Source: Zootoca vivipara (lineage: Eukaryota). Taken from it: a stretch of 64,000 nucleotides of DNA. The stretch's first letter is position 1. Every line of letters begins with the position of its first letter. Of this stretch, positions 13,290 through 44,639 are shown piece after piece. The stretch is taken from assembly GCF_963506605.1 (NCBI RefSeq), contig NC_083284.1, forward strand, positions 17,422,001 through 17,486,000, in the 5' to 3' direction. The position numbers and the translations under genes were made by a program. The notes below the pieces were generated by a model that searched no databases, was not told the origin of the DNA, and worked only from the letters and a program-made list of their open reading frames with translations.

Positions 13290-13512
13290 TGCTATACCAT
13301 GGTTTATTGTGATGTTTAACCACAATTAGCAAGTTCATGAATTGCATAAAAATTAAATCAGTAACTTCTTGGACAGTTGTGCAGTATCTGTTTTGCTGTT
13401 ATGGTGCTTTCTTGGTTATAGGTAAGTTGGCTTAATTATAGTTACACAAAGATACAGGTGTTGAGTTTACTGCAAGTGTAAGAATTCTTCTGTCAAAGTA
13501 TTTTGCATGAAT

Positions 13513-13605
13513 AAGCTCATACCTATGACAAACTTAGTTGGTCTCTAAGGTGCTACTGGAAGGATTTTTTTATTTTGTTTTGACTGCGTCAGACCAACAC
13601 GGCTA
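13513..13605 (+). mobile_element. PLE 3' terminal fragment (pLTR end plus tail)
   Basis: aagctcatacc...aacttagttggtctctaaggtgctactggaaggattttttt...cagaccaacacggcta aligns with 42847-42936. Confidence 0.85.
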
Positions 13606-13949
13606 GGTAAAGGTAAAGGGACCCCTGACCATTAGGTCCAGTCGTGACCGACTCTGGGGTTGCGCACTCATCTCGCATTATTGGCCGAGGGAGCCGGCGT
13701 ATAGCTTCCAGGTCATGTGGCCAGCATGACAAAGCCAGTTCTGGCGAACCAGAGCAGCACACGGAAACGCCGTTTACCTTCCCGCTGTAGCGGTTCCTAT
13801 TTATCTACTTGCATTTTGATGTGCTTTCGAACTGCTAGGTTGGCAGGAGCTGGGACCAAGCAACGGGAGCTCACCCCGTCACAGGGATTCGAACCGCCGA
13901 CCTTCTGATCAGCAAGCCCTAGGCTCAGTGGTTTAACCACAGCGCCACC
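13606..13949 (-). mobile_element. Sauria SINE (Squam1-type)
   Basis: Highly similar to 12279-12618; B-box GGTTCGAATCCC on the minus strand; abuts the PLE tail fragment. Confidence 0.92.
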
Positions 13950-38103: not shown

Positions 38104-38321
38104 CAGTGGTACCTCGACTTATGAAGGCGATCTGTTCCGCGGCACTCTTCGGAAGTTGAAAACTTCAGAAGTTGAAGCGTCCATTTTGCGCATGCGCAAA
38201 GCGTGATTTTGCGCTTTGCGCATGCACAGAATGTGTGCGTTGTGAAAATACTTCCGGGTTAGCGGACTTCGGAAGTCAAAACCTTCAGAAGTCGAGGCAT
38301 TCGTAAGTCGAGGTACCACTG
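38104..38321. mobile_element. Tigger-like MITE
   Basis: CAGTGGTACCTCGACTTA...TAAGTCGAGGTACCACTG. Confidence 0.88.
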
Positions 38322-39007
38322 CTCCATGAATCAAATTGCCCTTACATTCACCTGTGGCAATTAAAAAGTCATTATTTGCTTGCTAAGAACAGTTGTGACT
38401 AGATTATTGTCCTTTACCCATTTTCCTAAAACCATCTTTATTAAGTTTTCAGGGCGAGAAAATGAACTTTAGCCAGTGGGGAAAGCTTATTCAAAACCTT
38501 TAGACGGAGTCATTAAAAATACCTCTATGGGGATTTTTGTTTATTAAAGCAGTAAGCAAGAATTTTAAAGAAAGTCAAAATAAGGGGAGGGCTGATTATT
38601 CATCCTTTGATTGAGGTGGATTATTGCAGTGTCCCAGTTCTCCTAAAGCACCTAGGAAAAATAAAGCAATTTAATCATTAGGACAGGGACTCAAAGTTCA
38701 TTATGATGATAATTCATTCCTGACAGGCATGCTGTGAGTTATTGAACTTGAGAAGTTTTAAGTCCATGGATGCAATTGCAAGAATCACCTCCAGGGCAAG
38801 TCCTACTACAAGTTGGGGGGGGGGGGTTACACTTATGTCCAAAGTCTGTTTTTCTGTGCAAGCAAACAAGCACTTATTTGTAGCGGCTGGACTGGTATGT
38901 GAGACAGAGCCATAATAACATCCTGCAAGCTGATAATCAAACCATTTCATCATGTTGTAATTGACTCCATGCAGACTTATAACTGCATTCGCCAGTGTTC
39001 ATTTGTT

Positions 39008-39017
39008 TGTGTGTGTA

Positions 39018-39073
<56 letters not shown>
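39008..39073. repeat. (GT)n(AT)n microsatellite ~60 bp from the PLE insertion site
   Basis: Direct reading. Confidence 0.95.
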
Positions 39074-39076
<3 letters not shown>

Positions 39077-39194
39077 GAGGATTCCTTTTGAGTGCAATTC
39101 TGTAACTTTACAAATAATGAAGTATTCCAGAGTTACTGTTACTTGGAAAAATTCCTTCAGTAGCACCTTAAAGACCAACTAAGTTTTTATTTTG

Positions 39195-39232
39195 GTATGA
39201 GCTTTCGTGTGCATGCACACTTCTTCAGATAC
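39195..39232 (-). ncRNA. Minimal type I hammerhead ribozyme motif (inverted arm copy)
   Basis: Exact reverse complement of 42819-42856. Confidence 0.88.
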
Positions 39233-39431
39233 AGTGAAATGGAAGTTTCCATTATGAATAATCAGCCCTTATGTAGAGAAGGGGTGGGGAGGGGTGGGGA
39301 TGGGGAGGGGGGATCACTCAGAAGGGTGGTGGAAATGGGTGATTGACTGACTGATAGCTGTTGATGACCGCAAACGACTGCAAATGGTTTTGCATGAAAA
39401 AGCAAGGGTTGAGATGGCTGAAGATCGCTTA

Positions 39432-40822
39432 TCATGTATAATGAGATAAGAACCCGATATCTCTGTTCAAACCAGGTCCCTCCATGGTTTTGAGCTTGGT
39501 GATAAGTTGCAATTCAGCAACTTCTCTTTCCAGTCTATTTCTGAAATTCTTTTGTAGTAAGACAGCTACTTTGAGATCTTGTATAGAATGTCCTGGGAGA
39601 TTGAAGTGTTCTCCTACTGGTTTTTCTGTCTTCTGGTTCCTGATGTCAGATTTATGTCCATTTATCCTTTGGCGTAGGGTTTGGCCTGTTTGTCCAATAT
39701 AGAGAGCTGAAGGGCACTGTTGGCATTTGATGGCATACACAATGTTAGAGGATGAGCAATTAAATAGTCCTGAGATGGTATGTTGGATGTTGTTGGGGCC
39801 AGTAATGGTGTTGTCTGGGTGTATGTGGCAGCAAAGTTGGCATCTGGGTTTATTGCAGGCTCTGGTACCAGTGTCCATGTTAAGTCTGGTGGTTGTATTC
39901 TTGTGGGTGAGGAGTTGTTTAAGATTGGGTGGCTGTCTGTAGGCAATGAAAGGTCTTCCTCCCAGAGCTTGAGAAAGGGAGCGGTCATTGTCCAGGAGAG
40001 GCTGTAGATCTCTGATGATGCGTTGTACTGTTTTAGCTTGGGAGCTGTATGTGATGACTAGTGGTGTTCTGTTATTTTCTTTTTTGGGTCTGTCTTGCAG
40101 CAGGTTCTCTCTAGGTATCTGTCTGGCTCTGTTGATCTGTTGTTTAACTTCATCAGGTGGATATTTTAGTTCTAAAAAGGTTTGCTGTAGATCTCTTAGG
40201 TGAGATTCTCTGTCTGTAGAGTTGGAACAGATGCGGTTGTAACGTAAGGCCTGGCTGTATACGATGGATTGTTTGGTATGTTTGGGATGGTAGCTAGAAG
40301 CATGTAGATATGTTTGTCGGTCAGTTGGTTTTCTGTATAAGGTGGTGTCTATACGTCCATCCTGTATTTTTATAGTAGTGTCCAAAAATGTATTTCTTGC
40401 ATAGATTGGTTCATTGTTAGGTTGATGGTGGGGTGAAAGTCATTGAATGTCTGGTGGAAGGTTTCCAGGGTCTGTTGTCCATGTGTCCAGATAATAAAAA
40501 TATCGTCAATGTATCGCAGGTACAGGAGAGGTTTGAGTGGGTAGGAGTTAAGGAAACGTTGTTCTAAATCTGCCATGAAGATGTTGGCATACTGTGGGGC
40601 CATGCGGGTGCCCATGGCTGTGCCGCTGATCTGGAGGAACAGGTCATCACCAAATTTGAAGTGGTTGTGGGTAAGGACAAAGTGGCAGAGTTTGGTAGCA
40701 AAGTCCGCTGTGGTTTTATCTGAAATGGTGTTCCTTATGGCTTGTAAACCATCATTGTGTGGGATGTTGGTATATAGAGATTCCACATCCATAGTGGCTA
40801 GTATAGTATTGTTAGGAAGATT
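39432..40822 (-). pseudogene. Inverted partial copy of the PLE ORF (RT C-terminal half plus GIY-YIG) with a 1-bp frameshift
   Basis: Minus ORFs 40370..40909 and 39432..40385 repeat the plus-strand protein exactly from NLPNNTILATMDVES to the stop. The break is an A5 run near 40384-40388, where the plus arm has T6. Confidence 0.93.
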
Positions 40823-42631
40823 ATAGACATTATAATTAAAGAGGCAGACAAGGGTGGAGCTGTCGTCATCATGAACAAAACTGATTACATCCAAGAGGCC
40901 CACAGACAACTTTCCAATACTGCCTTTTACATGAAATTGGACTCAGACCCCACACAAGCATACAAAAAAGAACTGAACAAGATTATTAAGGAGCTACCCC
41001 TACACATCCAAGAACAGATCCTCACAAACACACCAGCGGAACCTCGGCCAGGAACTTTCTATCTTCTACCCAAAATACACAAACCAGGAAACCCAGGACG
41101 CCCCATCATCTCAGGTATTGGCACCATTACAGTGGGTGTTTCCGGCTATATGGACTCTGTTCTGAAACCATATGCTATCAGTGCTCCCAGCTACGTACGT
41201 GACACCACAGATTTTCTGAGGAAAATACAATATTTGAACAATCTTCCTAACAATACTATACTAGCCACTATGGATGTGGAATCTCTATATACCAACATCC
41301 CACACAATGATGGTTTACAAGCCATAAGGAACACCATTTCAGATAAAACCACAGCGGACTTTGCTACCAAACTCTGCCACTTTGTCCTTACCCACAACCA
41401 CTTCAAATTTGGTGATGACCTGTTCCTCCAGATCAGCGGCACAGCCATGGGCACCCGCATGGCCCCACAGTATGCCAACATCTTCATGGCAGATTTAGAA
41501 CAACGTTTCCTTAACTCCTACCCACTCAAACCTCTCCTGTACCTGCGATACATTGACGATATTTTTATTATCTGGACACATGGACAACAGACCCTGGAAA
41601 CCTTCCACCAGACATTCAATGACTTTCACCCCACCATCAACCTAACAATGAACCAATCTATGCAAGAAATACATTTTTTGGACACTACTATAAAAATACA
41701 GGATGGACGTATAGACACCACCTTATACAGAAAACCAACTGACCGACAAACATATCTACATGCTTCTAGCTACCATCCCAAACATACCAAACAATCCATC
41801 GTATACAGCCAGGCCTTACGTTACAACCGCATCTGTTCCAACTCTACAGACAGAGAATCTCACCTAAGAGATCTACAGCAAACCTTTTTAGAACTAAAAT
41901 ATCCACCTGATGAAGTTAAACAACAGATCAACAGAGCCAGACAGATACCTAGAGAGAACCTGCTGCAAGACAGACCCAAAAAAGAAAATAACAGAACACC
42001 ACTAGTCATCACATACAGCTCCCAAGCTAAAACAGTACAACGCATCATCAGAGATCTACAGCCTCTCCTGGACAATGACCGCTCCCTTTCTCAAGCTCTG
42101 GGAGGAAGACCTTTCATTGCCTACAGACAGCCACCCAATCTTAAACAACTCCTCACCCACAAGAATACAACCACCAGACTTAACATGGACACTGGTACCA
42201 GAGCCTGCAATAAACCCAGATGCCAACTTTGCTGCCACATACACCCAGACAACACCATTACTGGCCCCAACAACATCCAACATACCATCTCAGGACTATT
42301 TAATTGCTCATCCTCTAACATTGTGTATGCCATCAAATGCCAACAGTGCCCTTCAGCTCTCTATATTGGACAAACAGGCCAAACCCTACGCCAAAGGATA
42401 AATGGACATAAATCTGACATCAGGAACCAGAAGACAGAAAAACCAGTAGGAGAACACTTCAATCTCCCAGGACATTCTATACAAGATCTCAAAGTAGCTG
42501 TCTTACTACAAAAGAATTTCAGAAATAGACTGGAAAGAGAAGTTGCTGAATTGCAACTTATCACCAAGCTCAAAACCATGGAGGGACCTGGTTTGAACAG
42601 AGATATCGGGTTCTTATCTCATTATACATGA
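40823..42631 (+). CDS. PLE reverse transcriptase / GIY-YIG endonuclease polyprotein, 5'-truncated but uninterrupted (the ATG at 40871 is internal)
   Basis: Frame open from 40823: IDIIIKEADKGGAVVIMN (PLE DKG motif), FYLLPKIHKPGNPGRPIIS, ATMDVESLYTNIP, QISGTAMGTRMAPQYANIFM, YLRYIDD (YIDD at 41549-41560), C-x4-C-x2-C linker CNKPRCQLC (Neptune-type), and NIVYAIKCQQC...LYIGQT...R..H...HF...E (GIY-YIG with CCHH). Confidence 0.95.
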   Translation: MDIIIKEADKGGAVVIMNKTDYIQEAHRQLSNTAFYMKLDSDPTQAYKKELNKIIKELPLHIQEQILTNTPAEPRPGTFYLLPKIHKPGNPGRPIISGIGTITVGVSGYMDSVLKPYAISAPSYVRDTTDFLRKIQYLNNLPNNTILATMDVESLYTNIPHNDGLQAIRNTISDKTTADFATKLCHFVLTHNHFKFGDDLFLQISGTAMGTRMAPQYANIFMADLEQRFLNSYPLKPLLYLRYIDDIFIIWTHGQQTLETFHQTFNDFHPTINLTMNQSMQEIHFLDTTIKIQDGRIDTTLYRKPTDRQTYLHASSYHPKHTKQSIVYSQALRYNRICSNSTDRESHLRDLQQTFLELKYPPDEVKQQINRARQIPRENLLQDRPKKENNRTPLVITYSSQAKTVQRIIRDLQPLLDNDRSLSQALGGRPFIAYRQPPNLKQLLTHKNTTTRLNMDTGTRACNKPRCQLCCHIHPDNTITGPNNIQHTISGLFNCSSSNIVYAIKCQQCPSALYIGQTGQTLRQRINGHKSDIRNQKTEKPVGEHFNLPGHSIQDLKVAVLLQKNFRNRLEREVAELQLITKLKTMEGPGLNRDIGFLSHYT

Positions 42632-42818
42632 TAAGCGATCTTCAGCCATCTCAACCCTTGCTTTTTCATGCAAAACCATTTGCAGTCGTTTGCGGTCATC
42701 AACAGCTATCAGTCAGTCAATCACCCATTTCCACCACCCTTCTGAGTGATCCCCCCTCCCCATCCCCACCCCTCCCCACCCCTTCTCTACATAAGTGCCT
42801 GGAAACTTCCATTTCACT

Positions 42819-42856
42819 GTATCTGAAGAAGTGTGCATGCACACGAAAGCTCATAC
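42819..42856 (+). ncRNA. Minimal type I hammerhead ribozyme motif in the PLE pseudo-LTR
   Basis: GUAU-CUGAAGA-A-GUGUGCAUGCACAC-GAAA-GC-UC^AUAC. Core boxes CUGANGA and GAAA, palindromic stem II, loopless palindromic stem III (AGCU), stem I GUAU/AUAC, predicted cut after CUC (42852). PLE pLTRs are known to carry such minimal hammerheads. Confidence 0.88.
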
Positions 42857-43159
42857 CAAAATAAAAACTTAGTTGGTCTTTAAGGTGCTACTGAAGGAAT
42901 TTTTTTATTTTACTTCGATCCAGACCAACACGGCTACCTACCTGTAACCTGTTACTTGGAAGACACTGTCAGAGAAGTGTACTGTCATCATGGTCATCTT
43001 CACTGACCCCCTCACAGAGGTGAAGCTGCTATTTGAAAAAAAGAAGAAGTAGCAGCTGCTGCCAGTTTGAGCCTGGAAGGGCAGCCATAGGGGTGGGTGC
43101 AAAGCTTGGTTCAGATTGCATTTTAATGCAAAACTTTCTGATTTTTTTTTAAAAAATAT

Positions 43160-43365
43160 TACTTATTGTTTGTATACCACTCTTCATCCAAAGATCACAG
43201 GGCAGTTCACAACATAAAAATACAAAATGAGGACACAAAATACATAATAAAAACAAGAACAAGAACAAACATTGCTCCCACTAACACATTTAAAAGAACA
43301 TAGAATGTTAATCATCCAAAGGCCTGGTTCAAGAGAAACATTTTTGCCTGGTGCCTAAAGATATG
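43160..43365 (-). repeat. L2-type 3' UTR fragment
   Basis: ttgtataccactcttcatccaaagatcacagggcagttcacaac ... ttttgcctggtgcctaaa. Confidence 0.55.
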
Positions 43366-44639
43366 AAATGCATCCTTCCTGAAACAACATGAGAACTAAA
43401 ATGCAGCTATTTTAAATTCATGCTGCTTTGAATTTTGTGATGTTCTCCAACCAGATAATGTGTACAGAAATGTGTATATTAAGAGTACATAAAAACAACA
43501 TAGAAAAATGCATCATGTTAGGGGAAATTACTTGCAAAATGTATATGTTAGGCAAAACTGCATCTATGTGTATAGTCTGGAAAATGCAGAGTAAAATGCT
43601 GATAAATACTGGGAAGAAGATTAATTGTTAAACCACTCTGGGAATTGTAGGTCAGTGAGGAGAATAGGGGTCTCCTAACAACTCTCAGCACCCTTAACAA
43701 ACTATAGTTCCCTAGATTCTTTGGGGTAAGTCATGACTCTCAAACTGGTATTAAAACACTTTAAATGTATGGTGTGCTTGTACCCTAGGAAAGATTTTTC
43801 AGTAGCTCCTTCTAGTCATTCATGTTTGATGAAATGAATGCACAATGTTGGGAACATGATGTCGGCAGGCACTGTCTCTTACCTACACACACGTTCATTA
43901 GAATCTGTAGACAGCTCTCACTATGTATAGTTAGCATGAGTAAAATTTGGGTGCCAATCCCATGGAAATTCTAATTTAACCTAAAGGTCTGTGGTGCCAT
44001 CTTGTAGTTGAACGTGATGGCCCGCCCATCAACCTCACTTGCTGAATACACACAGCTTAGATTCTTAAAAGCTCTTTGGAGGTTTCCATGTTCATAGTTC
44101 AAAAGAGTAAGCAGATCACTTTCTGGACTGTGAAGAAAATTCCTGTCACTGTGTAAAATTGTATCATTATGGTATTATGGAGTTAAGGTCACCGAGGGAG
44201 AAAAGCATTGCCACACTCCATTTATTGAAATAGCCCTCATTGGTACAGAAGTCACAAAATGAGAACCACAAGGGTATGCTCTTTAGCACCATGACTGTAT
44301 GAATTCTAAGTCGGTAACACTTTGGCTTTTGCATGCTAATTCTAAGTTACTGTGGGCCAAACTGATCATCATATAAAATATATATACAGTATGCACAGGT
44401 TTTTTTGGGGGGGGGGAATGGGGCAGAGTTTTAAAGTGCAAATTGCATCAATAGAGAAGGGTTGCCTCTGACAGTTATTGGGATCACAGCAGGCATAGGG
44501 GGGGGGGGGAAACGTAATCCTTTCATTTCTGAAGGAAATATGTCTTCTGCTATTGGCTTTTGGAAGGAAATCTTCCACTGGCATCACTATAGGACTTTCT
44601 CCCAATGCAAATAATAGCACTTTGCAAGTAACACTGAAT

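Follow-up and report, generated by a model that had tools for sequence, protein, structure and literature searches.

The insertion at this locus is made up of two truncated copies of a Penelope-like retrotransposon (PLE) from a lizard, arranged head to head within one 13-bp target-site duplication (TSD; Table 1). An earlier, sequence-only reading of this DNA had proposed such a palindromic insertion, and the unique pair of 13-mers and the inverted-repeat blocks described below confirm it. The 13-mer has no other occurrence on either strand of the window (the whole 64-kb stretch of DNA that was analysed), and a given 13-mer would recur by chance at a fixed position with a probability of about 4^-13. 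Because the two terminal A's could equally derive from the T run of the element, the length of the TSD is given as 11-13 bp.

Table 1. Features of the insertion and its left flank (positions in the window)
Feature	Position	Strand	Details and basis
Flank 14-mer GGCTGATTATTCAT, likely patch template	38590..38603	+	Single-copy; single-copy depth in bin 38577-38753
TSD, left copy CTGTTACTTGGAA	39136..39148		Exact 13-mer, only here and at 42949
Minus arm, 5'-truncated PLE copy	39149..40822	-	1,674 nt, 3' end leftward, ends at tail-less boundary ...GGAATTT(TT); arm comparison
Minimal hammerhead motif (candidate), minus arm	39195..39232	-	Mirror of 42819-42856, in the 100% inverted repeat block 39147-39251/42800-42904
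Patch, sense GGCTGATTATTCATAA	39252..39267	-	Between ...CTACATAAG and TGGAAACTTCC; plus arm has 4 nt (TGCC) there; arm comparison
Filler AT	40823..40824		2 nt between the arms, templated by neither; longer family copies and relatives' proteins
ORF	40823..42634	+	602 codons and stop, with DKG (EADKGG), RT with YIDD, CCHH linker CNKPRCQLCCHIH, GIY-YIG
Plus arm, 5'-truncated PLE copy	40825..42948	+	2,124 nt, 3' end rightward; arm comparison
Reverse transcriptase (RT) domain	41222..41656	+	Pfam RVT_1, residues 134-278, E = 1.6e-12, 48 bits (cut-off 29.6)
GIY-YIG endonuclease domain	42320..42445	+	Pfam, residues 500-541, E = 4.9e-5, 24 bits (cut-off 22.6)
Minimal type-I hammerhead motif (candidate)	42819..42856	+	GUAU-CUGAAGA-A-GUGUGCAUGCACAC-GAA-AGCU-C/AUAC, predicted cut 42852/42853; read by eye
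Tail, AC-rich	42905..42948	+	44-46 nt, ...ATTTTACTTCGATCCAGACCAACACGGCTACCTACCTGTAAC; plus arm only
TSD, right copy	42949..42961		Exact 13-mer; right-flank match of X15, X18 and X5 contigs starts exactly at 42949

The open reading frame lacks about 120 or more of the N-terminal residues found in Podarcis proteins, and what is retained opens with IKEADKGGAVV, the DKG motif N-terminal to the RT core, which is conserved in Podarcis and Zootoca relatives. The GIY-YIG domain lies C-terminal to the RT, with the CCHH motif upstream of it. In a protein search, proteins of Podarcis and Zootoca showed 94-95% identity and turtle proteins about 70%, and more than 4,000 protein matches at E <= 1e-30 bear RT and PLE-associated Pfam families. 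Matches at 90% identity or more form one cluster only (Podarcis, Zootoca and Logan contigs of up to 1.8 kb), and these matches were enough to locate the truncation in the protein. The Pfam matches, together with the readable DKG and CCHH motifs, support the Penelope-like identity that had been assigned earlier.

The reverse complement of the minus arm aligns to nucleotides 418-2080 of the plus arm (2,126 nt when counted with the filler), and the inverted repeat is made up of three gap-free, 100% complementary blocks (39147-39251/42800-42904, 39265-40388/41675-42798 and 40384-40822/41240-41678). There are no substitutions between the arms over 1,663 bp. The alignment bears out that they differ by a 1-bp homopolymer indel and one 16-for-4 nt patch, and by nothing else, and that the length balance of the sequence-only reading (1663+12-1=1674) is right. 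The indel, T5 for T6 at 40384-40388, shifts the minus-arm ORF, whose frame changes after ...QEIHF. The plus-arm section 40825-41239 is without counterpart in the minus arm. At the other extremity, the statement that both arms cover the same 3' ~1.66 kb holds for the 1,663 bp that they have in common but not for their 3' ends: the outer end of the minus arm is the boundary between tail and no tail, and the plus arm extends 44-46 nt farther out. The tail starts at about 42903/42905, a limit blurred by the T run, and it corresponds to the published PLE tail delimited by two RT start sites (PMC11167929). The same asymmetry, with a full tail on one arm only, is seen in an old mini head-to-head pair at 60244-60466, the second example in the window of the architecture of EN+ PLEs, in which 5'-truncated insertions have tandem or inverted partial copies and, optionally, a tail at one end, all within one TSD.

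The arms had been thought to be joined at 40822/40823. The minus arm does end at 40822, but the AT that follows is present in neither arm, and therefore the plus arm starts at 40825. Longer family copies, seen as loose contig ends at 40825, read ...AGGAACAACCC/AGACATT at this point, with ...GGAACAACCC before 40825, and Podarcis proteins have ...RNNPDIIIK where the plus arm gives IDIIIK, that is, P in the relatives and I here. Microhomology is absent from the junction.

Each arm carries a candidate minimal hammerhead near its 3' end. The motif, as read by eye, fits the four hallmarks of minimal hammerheads, namely an additional base between 9 and 10.1, pairing of G10.1 with C11.1, a 15.2-16.2 pair that is palindromic, and a conserved core (PMC4209133), and helix I and stem II form in the minimum free energy fold. 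Nevertheless, scanning 38500-43500 and 42790-42960 with Rfam brought up no hammerhead, and no Rfam hammerhead model matches the motif even at E = 10. Matches to the Rfam families mir-297, mir-466 and mir-1277 are sited on a (TG)n(TA)n microsatellite and were set aside as composition artefacts.

The sequence-only reading had implied that this layout was novel, which it is not. In published accounts of the typical PLE structure (PMC3846280, PMC8557442), an inverted, 5'-truncated copy adjoins the main copy, only one end bears a tail and there is one TSD, and by comparison with such copies the present layout is already known and ordinary for PLEs. The insertion shares with canonical EN+ PLE insertions (Evgen'ev & Arkhipova 2005; PMC3846280; PMC8557442) an ORF combining RT with a C-terminal GIY-YIG domain, 5' truncation, a head-to-head copy, a tail on one arm, and one TSD (about 10 bp in the canonical case) that encloses everything. 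The minimal hammerhead in the terminal repeat of canonical elements has a candidate counterpart here. It differs in that both copies are truncated, without a full-length ORF and without a direct pLTR, and in that the inverted arm, at 1.67 kb, reaches into the RT, whereas canonical inverted copies have the size of a pLTR (about 0.2 kb). With 44-46 nt, the tail is longer than the 30-40 nt of canonical elements, where it is optional.

One TSD around both arms had been taken to indicate one event, and this is consistent with contigs from three other individuals and one related species, which break or bridge exactly at the 13-mer. In organism B, matches stop at 39148 and resume at 42949; the X15 contig begins exactly at 42949; and the X18 contig matches 38665-38995 and 42949-43198 with 57 letters between. 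Since 140 letters would be expected between 38995 and 42949, either the microsatellite is 83 letters shorter in that individual or the contig is odd. These breakpoints suggest that other haplotypes lack the 3.8-kb block entirely, as would fit an empty allele, and the insertion is very young and probably still polymorphic. Two successive events, in which a second copy landed inverted exactly at the 5' junction of the first or an inverted duplication occurred later at the DNA level, are contradicted by a sole TSD that encloses both arms, with no direct repeat around either arm alone, by the lack of substitutions between the arms, and by the contigs of other samples, which miss both arms together. 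In favor of separate events, element sequences are among the possible targets of PLE nucleases (PMC11167929), and the arms do differ in homopolymer length and in the patch, but the patch was apparently copied from the local flank and not from another subfamily. We consider such a history highly improbable.

It could also be that the interior, or the entire minus arm, is an assembly artefact resulting from a palindromic chimeric read or a mis-join of identical repeats. Tandem and inverted PLE structures are known to trouble assemblies (PMC8557442), and homopolymer differences are typical read errors. In addition, no independent run shows the junction 40822-40825 among the contig matches listed, and for this reason the connection between the arms is taken from this assembly. 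However, a fold-back read would mirror the flanks, whereas the arms adjoin different unique flanks that are contiguous in the contigs of other samples. Matching 13-mers at both outer junctions also argue against an artefact, and neither outer ends with and without a tail nor a patch in one arm could come from a mirrored read. An artefact is thus very unlikely. For annotation, it is worth bearing in mind that palindromes of this kind are typical of PLEs and are not artefacts.

The best explanation of the insertion, and one that we hold to be reasonably probable, is that reverse transcription was primed on both strands of the target. The element nuclease would make cuts staggered by 11-13 bp, and both exposed 3' ends would prime reverse transcription of identical element RNA, supplied either as two RNAs in a dimeric particle or as two units of one tandem transcript. 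From the bottom strand, synthesis would begin at the distal RT start site and give the plus arm with its 44-nt tail, stopping after 2,124 nt, while from the top strand it would begin at the proximal start site and give the tail-less minus arm, stopping after 1,674 nt. The cDNAs would then be joined by their 3' ends through the two non-templated bases (AT), and each would be completed by copying the other. What the sequence and contigs show is the anatomy, the family assignment, the one-sided tail, the filler, the lack of substitutions between the arms and the breakpoints of other samples at the 13-mer; the order of events, the use of both strands as primers and how many RNA molecules took part are inferred. 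Such a course is favored over fold-back of a single cDNA because, in vitro, the PLE protein of the green anole cuts and extends the top strand as well as the bottom strand, and its RT starts at two neighboring internal positions separated by the length of the tail (PMC11167929). It also fits better because the minus arm stops at the tail-less boundary, the junction carries a 2-base filler, and no fold-back microhomology is present at 41240. Of the two models put forward by the sequence-only reading, priming on both strands is, on these three points, the better fit. The one-sided tail is compatible with it but is not explained by it, since the in vitro work reported no strand difference in the use of the start sites (PMC11167929).

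The insertion resembles Poseidon_Ac (PAc), from another lizard host, Anolis carolinensis, as studied by TPRT in vitro (Frangieh et al. 2024, PMC11167929): PAc cuts and extends both DNA strands, and its tail is bounded by two RT start sites. Distances from the hammerhead cut are similar as well, the start sites of PAc lying about 55 and 89 nt past it and the arms here ending about 50 and 96 nt past the predicted cut. PAc belongs to a different PLE family, however. Moreover, the PAc hammerhead overlaps a start codon, whereas here every reading frame is closed between the candidate hammerhead and the tail, and PAc prefers ATT cleavage sites, none of which is evident at this target.

A related scheme is known from L1 twin priming (Ostertag & Kazazian 2001). 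There, the 3' overhang on the top strand of a staggered break reportedly serves as primer for another round of reverse transcription, and the product is an inverted 5' segment within one TSD. That segment and the non-inverted part stem from one RNA, the inverted segment from farther upstream, and the two overlap little or not at all. The proposed second priming from a top-strand overhang and the inverted segment inside one TSD are alike in the two cases, but the insertion does not have the form of an L1-type product, as both orientations are represented over 1,663 nt and each arm begins at the 3' RT start region of the element. A literature search for PLEs linked to twin priming found nothing relevant, and a 2026 retrozyme preprint makes no mention of inverted copies.

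Fold-back self-priming, the other model of the sequence-only reading, has also been proposed for PLE inverted repeats (PMC3846280). Here, the 2,124-nt bottom-strand cDNA would prime itself 417 nt from its end and copy itself, and the hairpin strand would be joined to the left flank. Identity of the arm sequences is what one would expect if one arm was copied from the other. Mirror-image positions are also joined in many contigs of four runs (e.g. 39232 to 42819 and 39233 to 42818), and such spacerless palindromes were taken by Arkhipova (2013) as a sign of self-priming (PMC3846280), although at fixed positions they are also expected from two run-off cDNAs made on RNAs with a common 5' end. The insertion itself is unlike a spacerless palindrome in having a loop of 415-417 nt, next to the 2-nt filler. 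Microhomology near 41240, which was to favor fold-back, was not found: the cDNA end ...ATGTCT plus AT is without complementarity to the landing site, its terminal base being mismatched there, and a primer would need to end in ...GAAC. Copying back should furthermore cross the tail into the flank or stop at random, whereas the minus arm ends at the tail-less boundary. We therefore regard fold-back as unlikely.

PLE integration is poorly understood, the first in vitro system dating only from 2024. The locus reveals no new kind of element or mechanism, and its value is that of a well-resolved example. Two-strand cleavage and extension are already on record for a lizard PLE in vitro (PMC11167929). 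A substitution-free, apparently polymorphic insertion with known flanks offers a clean natural test of the in vitro claims of two-strand cleavage and extension and of a tail set by two start sites.

Subfamily-diagnostic differences between the arms were to favor priming on both strands, but the 16-for-4 patch does not tell two source RNAs apart, since it holds a copy of nearby flank DNA. Fourteen of its 16 nt are an exact inverted copy of the flank at 38590-38603, 546 bp away. With shuffles of the patch as control, the probability of such a match by chance is 0.002 for the window as a whole and about 1e-4 within 1 kb of the flanks; random 16-mers from the window were uninformative, the window's own repeats inflating the matches. 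From this match, the patch is best read as a local templated scar and not as a subfamily marker. It resembles Polymerase-theta-type templated insertions in that it holds a short inverted copy of DNA located on the same chromosome arm, leaves 2 bases unmatched and replaces 4 original bases, and differs in that its template, about 650 nt from the patch, is unusually distant for a scar of this type. Its origin may equally be an RT template switch in the course of integration or repair of the Polymerase-theta type. A more specific reading, which we find doubtful, is that the patch is a footprint of integration, the polymerase building the minus arm having switched briefly to the single-stranded (resected or unwound) left flank about 550 nt behind the nick before returning. 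If true, the locus would record PLE integration on a long single-stranded target end and, with one arm begun at the proximal and the other at the distal start site, would capture symmetric two-strand TPRT by a dimeric particle as it happens in vivo.

The 3.8-kb insertion consists of two 5'-truncated copies of one Penelope-like element (PLE) placed head-to-head, a minus arm and a plus arm, inside one target-site duplication (TSD). A repeat search resolved the arms as inverted copies of one sequence in three gap-free blocks (105, 1,124 and 439 nt) with 100% complementarity, and the minus arm, once reverse-complemented, aligns with positions 418-2080 of the plus arm as delimited, at 2,126 nt, in the sequence-only reading. 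Only two differences separate the arms, a T5/T6 homopolymer and a patch of 16 nt against 4 nt, exactly as that reading had described; its coordinates and length arithmetic are correct, the repeat blocks, the alignment and the two differences all being in agreement. The 13-mer has no further occurrence on either strand of the whole 64-kb window besides the two flanking copies. Two successive insertions are unlikely, as neither arm carries a separate TSD, and a mirrored-read assembly artefact cannot give these features, because it would not yield differing flanks, differing outer ends or a patch in one arm only.

Features of the 3.8-kb insertion and of the miniature head-to-head pair in the same window
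Feature	Position	Strand	Remark
TSD left copy, CTGTTACTTGGAA	39136-39148		follows unique flank
Minus arm, 1,674 nt	39149-40822	minus	PLE copy
AT filler, 2 nt	40823-40824		between arms
Plus arm, 2,124 nt	40825-42948	plus	PLE copy
TSD right copy, CTGTTACTTGGAA	42949-42961		unique flank beyond
T5/T6 homopolymer difference	40384-40388 (minus arm) vs 41675-41680 (plus arm)		
16-for-4 nt patch	39252-39267 (minus arm) vs about 42796-42799 (plus arm)		
Putative hammerhead, GUAU-CUGAAGA-A-GUGUGCAUGCACAC-GAA-AGCU-C|AUAC	42819-42856		3' of stop codon; motif-level match
Miniature pair, minus arm	60244-60364	minus	full tail
Miniature pair, plus arm	60365-60466	plus	begins at hammerhead helix I; most of tail missing

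The Penelope-like identity of the arms is borne out by the plus-arm ORF (602 codons, 40823-42631), which matches the Pfam families RVT_1 (E = 1.6e-12) and GIY-YIG (24 bits, exceeding the cut-off) and contains a DKG motif, YIDD and a CCHH linker. Among database proteins the closest come from the lacertid lizards Podarcis and Zootoca, with 94-95% identity, and turtle proteins are next at about 70%. These relatives mark the host as a lacertid-like squamate, in line with the Squam-type SINE sequence at 13610. Because the Podarcis proteins reach about 120 residues further N-terminally, both arms must be 5'-truncated; in the minus arm the reading frame is broken by the homopolymer change. Minimal, dimer-dependent hammerheads in PLE terminal repeats have four hallmarks, all of which the putative hammerhead shares: the conserved core, an additional base between positions 9 and 10.1, pairing of G10.1 with C11.1 and a palindromic 15.2-16.2 pair (PMC4209133). 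Helix I and stem II of the motif form in the MFE fold. Since none of the Rfam hammerhead models detects it, we rate the assignment as a motif-level match only.

The arms are not joined directly at 40822/40823, as had been proposed, but through a dinucleotide, AT, that is part of neither. Longer family copies among the contigs part from the window just before 40825, reading ...AGGAACAACCC, the Podarcis proteins read ...RNNPDIIIK against IDIIIK in the plus-arm ORF, and the minus arm, if continued, would read GTT. Since all three disagree with AT, the junction is a 2-nt filler without microhomology, as judged from diverging contig ends and protein relatives. Contigs of three other individuals under the same species label (X15, X16 and X18), together with those of X5, a related species, were placed on 38400-43700, and among those listed none crosses the central junction.

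At the outer ends, the arms do not share one 3' end, as had been supposed: beyond the common ~1.66 kb, the plus arm runs on by a tail of 44-46 nt (about 42905-42948, ...ATTTTACTTCGATCCAGACCAACACGGCTACCTACCTGTAAC) present in that arm only; the minus arm ends within the T run preceding it. The minus and plus arms end about 50 and 96 nt, respectively, past the predicted hammerhead cut, compared with reverse transcription start sites about 55 and 89 nt past the hammerhead cut of the green anole (Anolis carolinensis) PLE. In the latter, reverse transcription initiates at two adjacent internal sites, the intervening sequence being the genomic 'tail'; in contrast to R2 or L1, the PLE protein cuts and extends both strands in vitro (PMC11167929). 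Given this biochemistry and the similar distances, priming by both strands of a staggered cut, one of two models put forward in the sequence-only reading, is the simplest account of the insertion. The geometry calls for the 13-mer to have been nicked at its left edge on the bottom strand and at its right edge on the top strand, leaving two 3' overhangs facing into the insertion. The bottom strand would prime the plus-arm cDNA and the top strand the minus-arm cDNA, with the proximal and distal start sites used one per strand; the cDNAs would stop independently, at the 41240-equivalent and at 40825, and their 3' ends would be joined to each other with two added bases. The other model, in which the first cDNA folds back and primes its own copying, is disfavoured, because the cDNA end lacks complementarity to the landing site needed, the loop would measure about 417 nt, and back-copying offers no reason for a stop exactly at the tail-less boundary.

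The patch, which might have marked a subfamily difference between the arms, is no such difference but has a local counterpart. Single-copy flank DNA at 38590-38603, 546 nt to the left of where the element inserted, recurs in it as an exact inverted copy that accounts for 14 of the 16 bases (GGCTGATTATTCAT). With shuffled patches, 14-mer matches turned up somewhere in the window in 0.2% of the trials (P about 2e-3); restricted to 1 kb of the flanks, the figure was about 0.01% (P about 1e-4). A match to the local flank that shuffling so rarely produces argues for an origin at this locus, by template switch or templated repair, and the patch looks like a templated-insertion scar. The arms would then be copies of identical RNA, patch and homopolymer length aside.

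The flanks are single-copy, with X5 about 2% divergent from the window there. The PLE family is extremely abundant, and summed contig depth is highest at the element's 3' ends, as expected of a 5'-truncating retroelement. Several contigs bear on the empty allele that the sequence-only reading had called for. A 635-nt contig of X18 lacks the 3.8-kb block, since both flanks are placed on it (letters 1-328 on 38665-38995, letters 386-635 on 42949-43198), the right match opening with the 13-mer's first base. At 39118, depth in X18 equals that of this contig (4.7), which suggests that it also covers the left flank's final 52 nt. It holds, however, 57 letters between 38995 and 42949 instead of the 140 of a simple empty allele, so that its (TG)n(TA)n region, masked in the comparison, would have to be 83 letters shorter than in the window. 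A 251-nt contig of X15 starts exactly at 42949; de Bruijn contigs break where filled and empty alleles coexist. For X5, the distances from variants to the match ends locate the latter at 39148 and 42949, positions that likewise bound a single 13-mer on the outside. The evidence that both arms are jointly absent from other haplotypes and the sister species is good but not conclusive, and it agrees with the zero substitutions between the arms, which, if about 1e-9 substitutions per site and year are assumed, would imply an age below roughly 1 Myr unless gene conversion homogenised the arms. X15, X18 and X5 all have their right-flank start at 42949; in X16 the right-flank contig starts at 42963, two bases past the 13-mer, possibly owing to a nearby heterozygous difference.

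In typical PLEs an inverted 5'-truncated copy abuts the main copy within a single TSD, a hammerhead lies in the repeat and a tail of 30-40 bp is found at one end only; both self-priming and nuclease-driven explanations of the inverted copies have been discussed (PMC3846280, PMC8557442). The present insertion differs in its long inverted arm (1.67 kb, reaching the RT), in having no full-length unit, and in being pristine and probably polymorphic. Since these departures are a matter of degree, we rate it as a real, well-resolved case of an already known architecture, of modest value mainly as a natural test case.

An old miniature head-to-head pair at 60244-60466, about 75% identical, consists of two 3' ends in opposite orientation that meet near the hammerhead. 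An 8-bp sequence (TATGGATT) at 60236 and 60467 may be its TSD (60236-60474 overall), and the pair shares the architecture of the 3.8-kb insertion, with a full tail on one arm only. Mirror-image joints (e.g. 39232 to 42819 and 39233 to 42818) recur in dozens of contigs per junction type in all four runs, from two species; they connect 39215-39233 with 42818-42840, at or near mirror positions just 5' of the hammerhead, and other contigs join 39215 to 42818/42819, which is how the arms of the 60.3-kb copy are joined. Such numbers indicate that short, nearly spacerless head-to-head dimers of hammerhead plus tail, with arms starting at the hammerhead's 5' edge, are very abundant in these genomes. 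The dimers may multiply as whole units, or arise again and again from RNAs whose 5' end is fixed.

The insertion site has a (TG)n(TA)n microsatellite (38996-39083) 60 bp to its left, and microsatellites are reportedly favoured by PLE relatives; weak Rfam mir-297/466/1277 matches were rejected as artefacts of this repeat. Further left, at 38104-38321, direct repeats of the CTTCGGAAGT type accompany an inverted repeat of 25 nt (CAGTGGTACCTCGACTTATGAAGGC / ...GTCGAGGTACCACTG); together they are probably a further small repeat element. A solo PLE 3' end at 13496-13616, about 75% identical and strongly 5'-truncated, begins inside hammerhead stem II and retains the tail; directly after it, at about 13607, comes a SINE-like sequence (GGTAAAGGTAAAGGGACCCCTGACC...).
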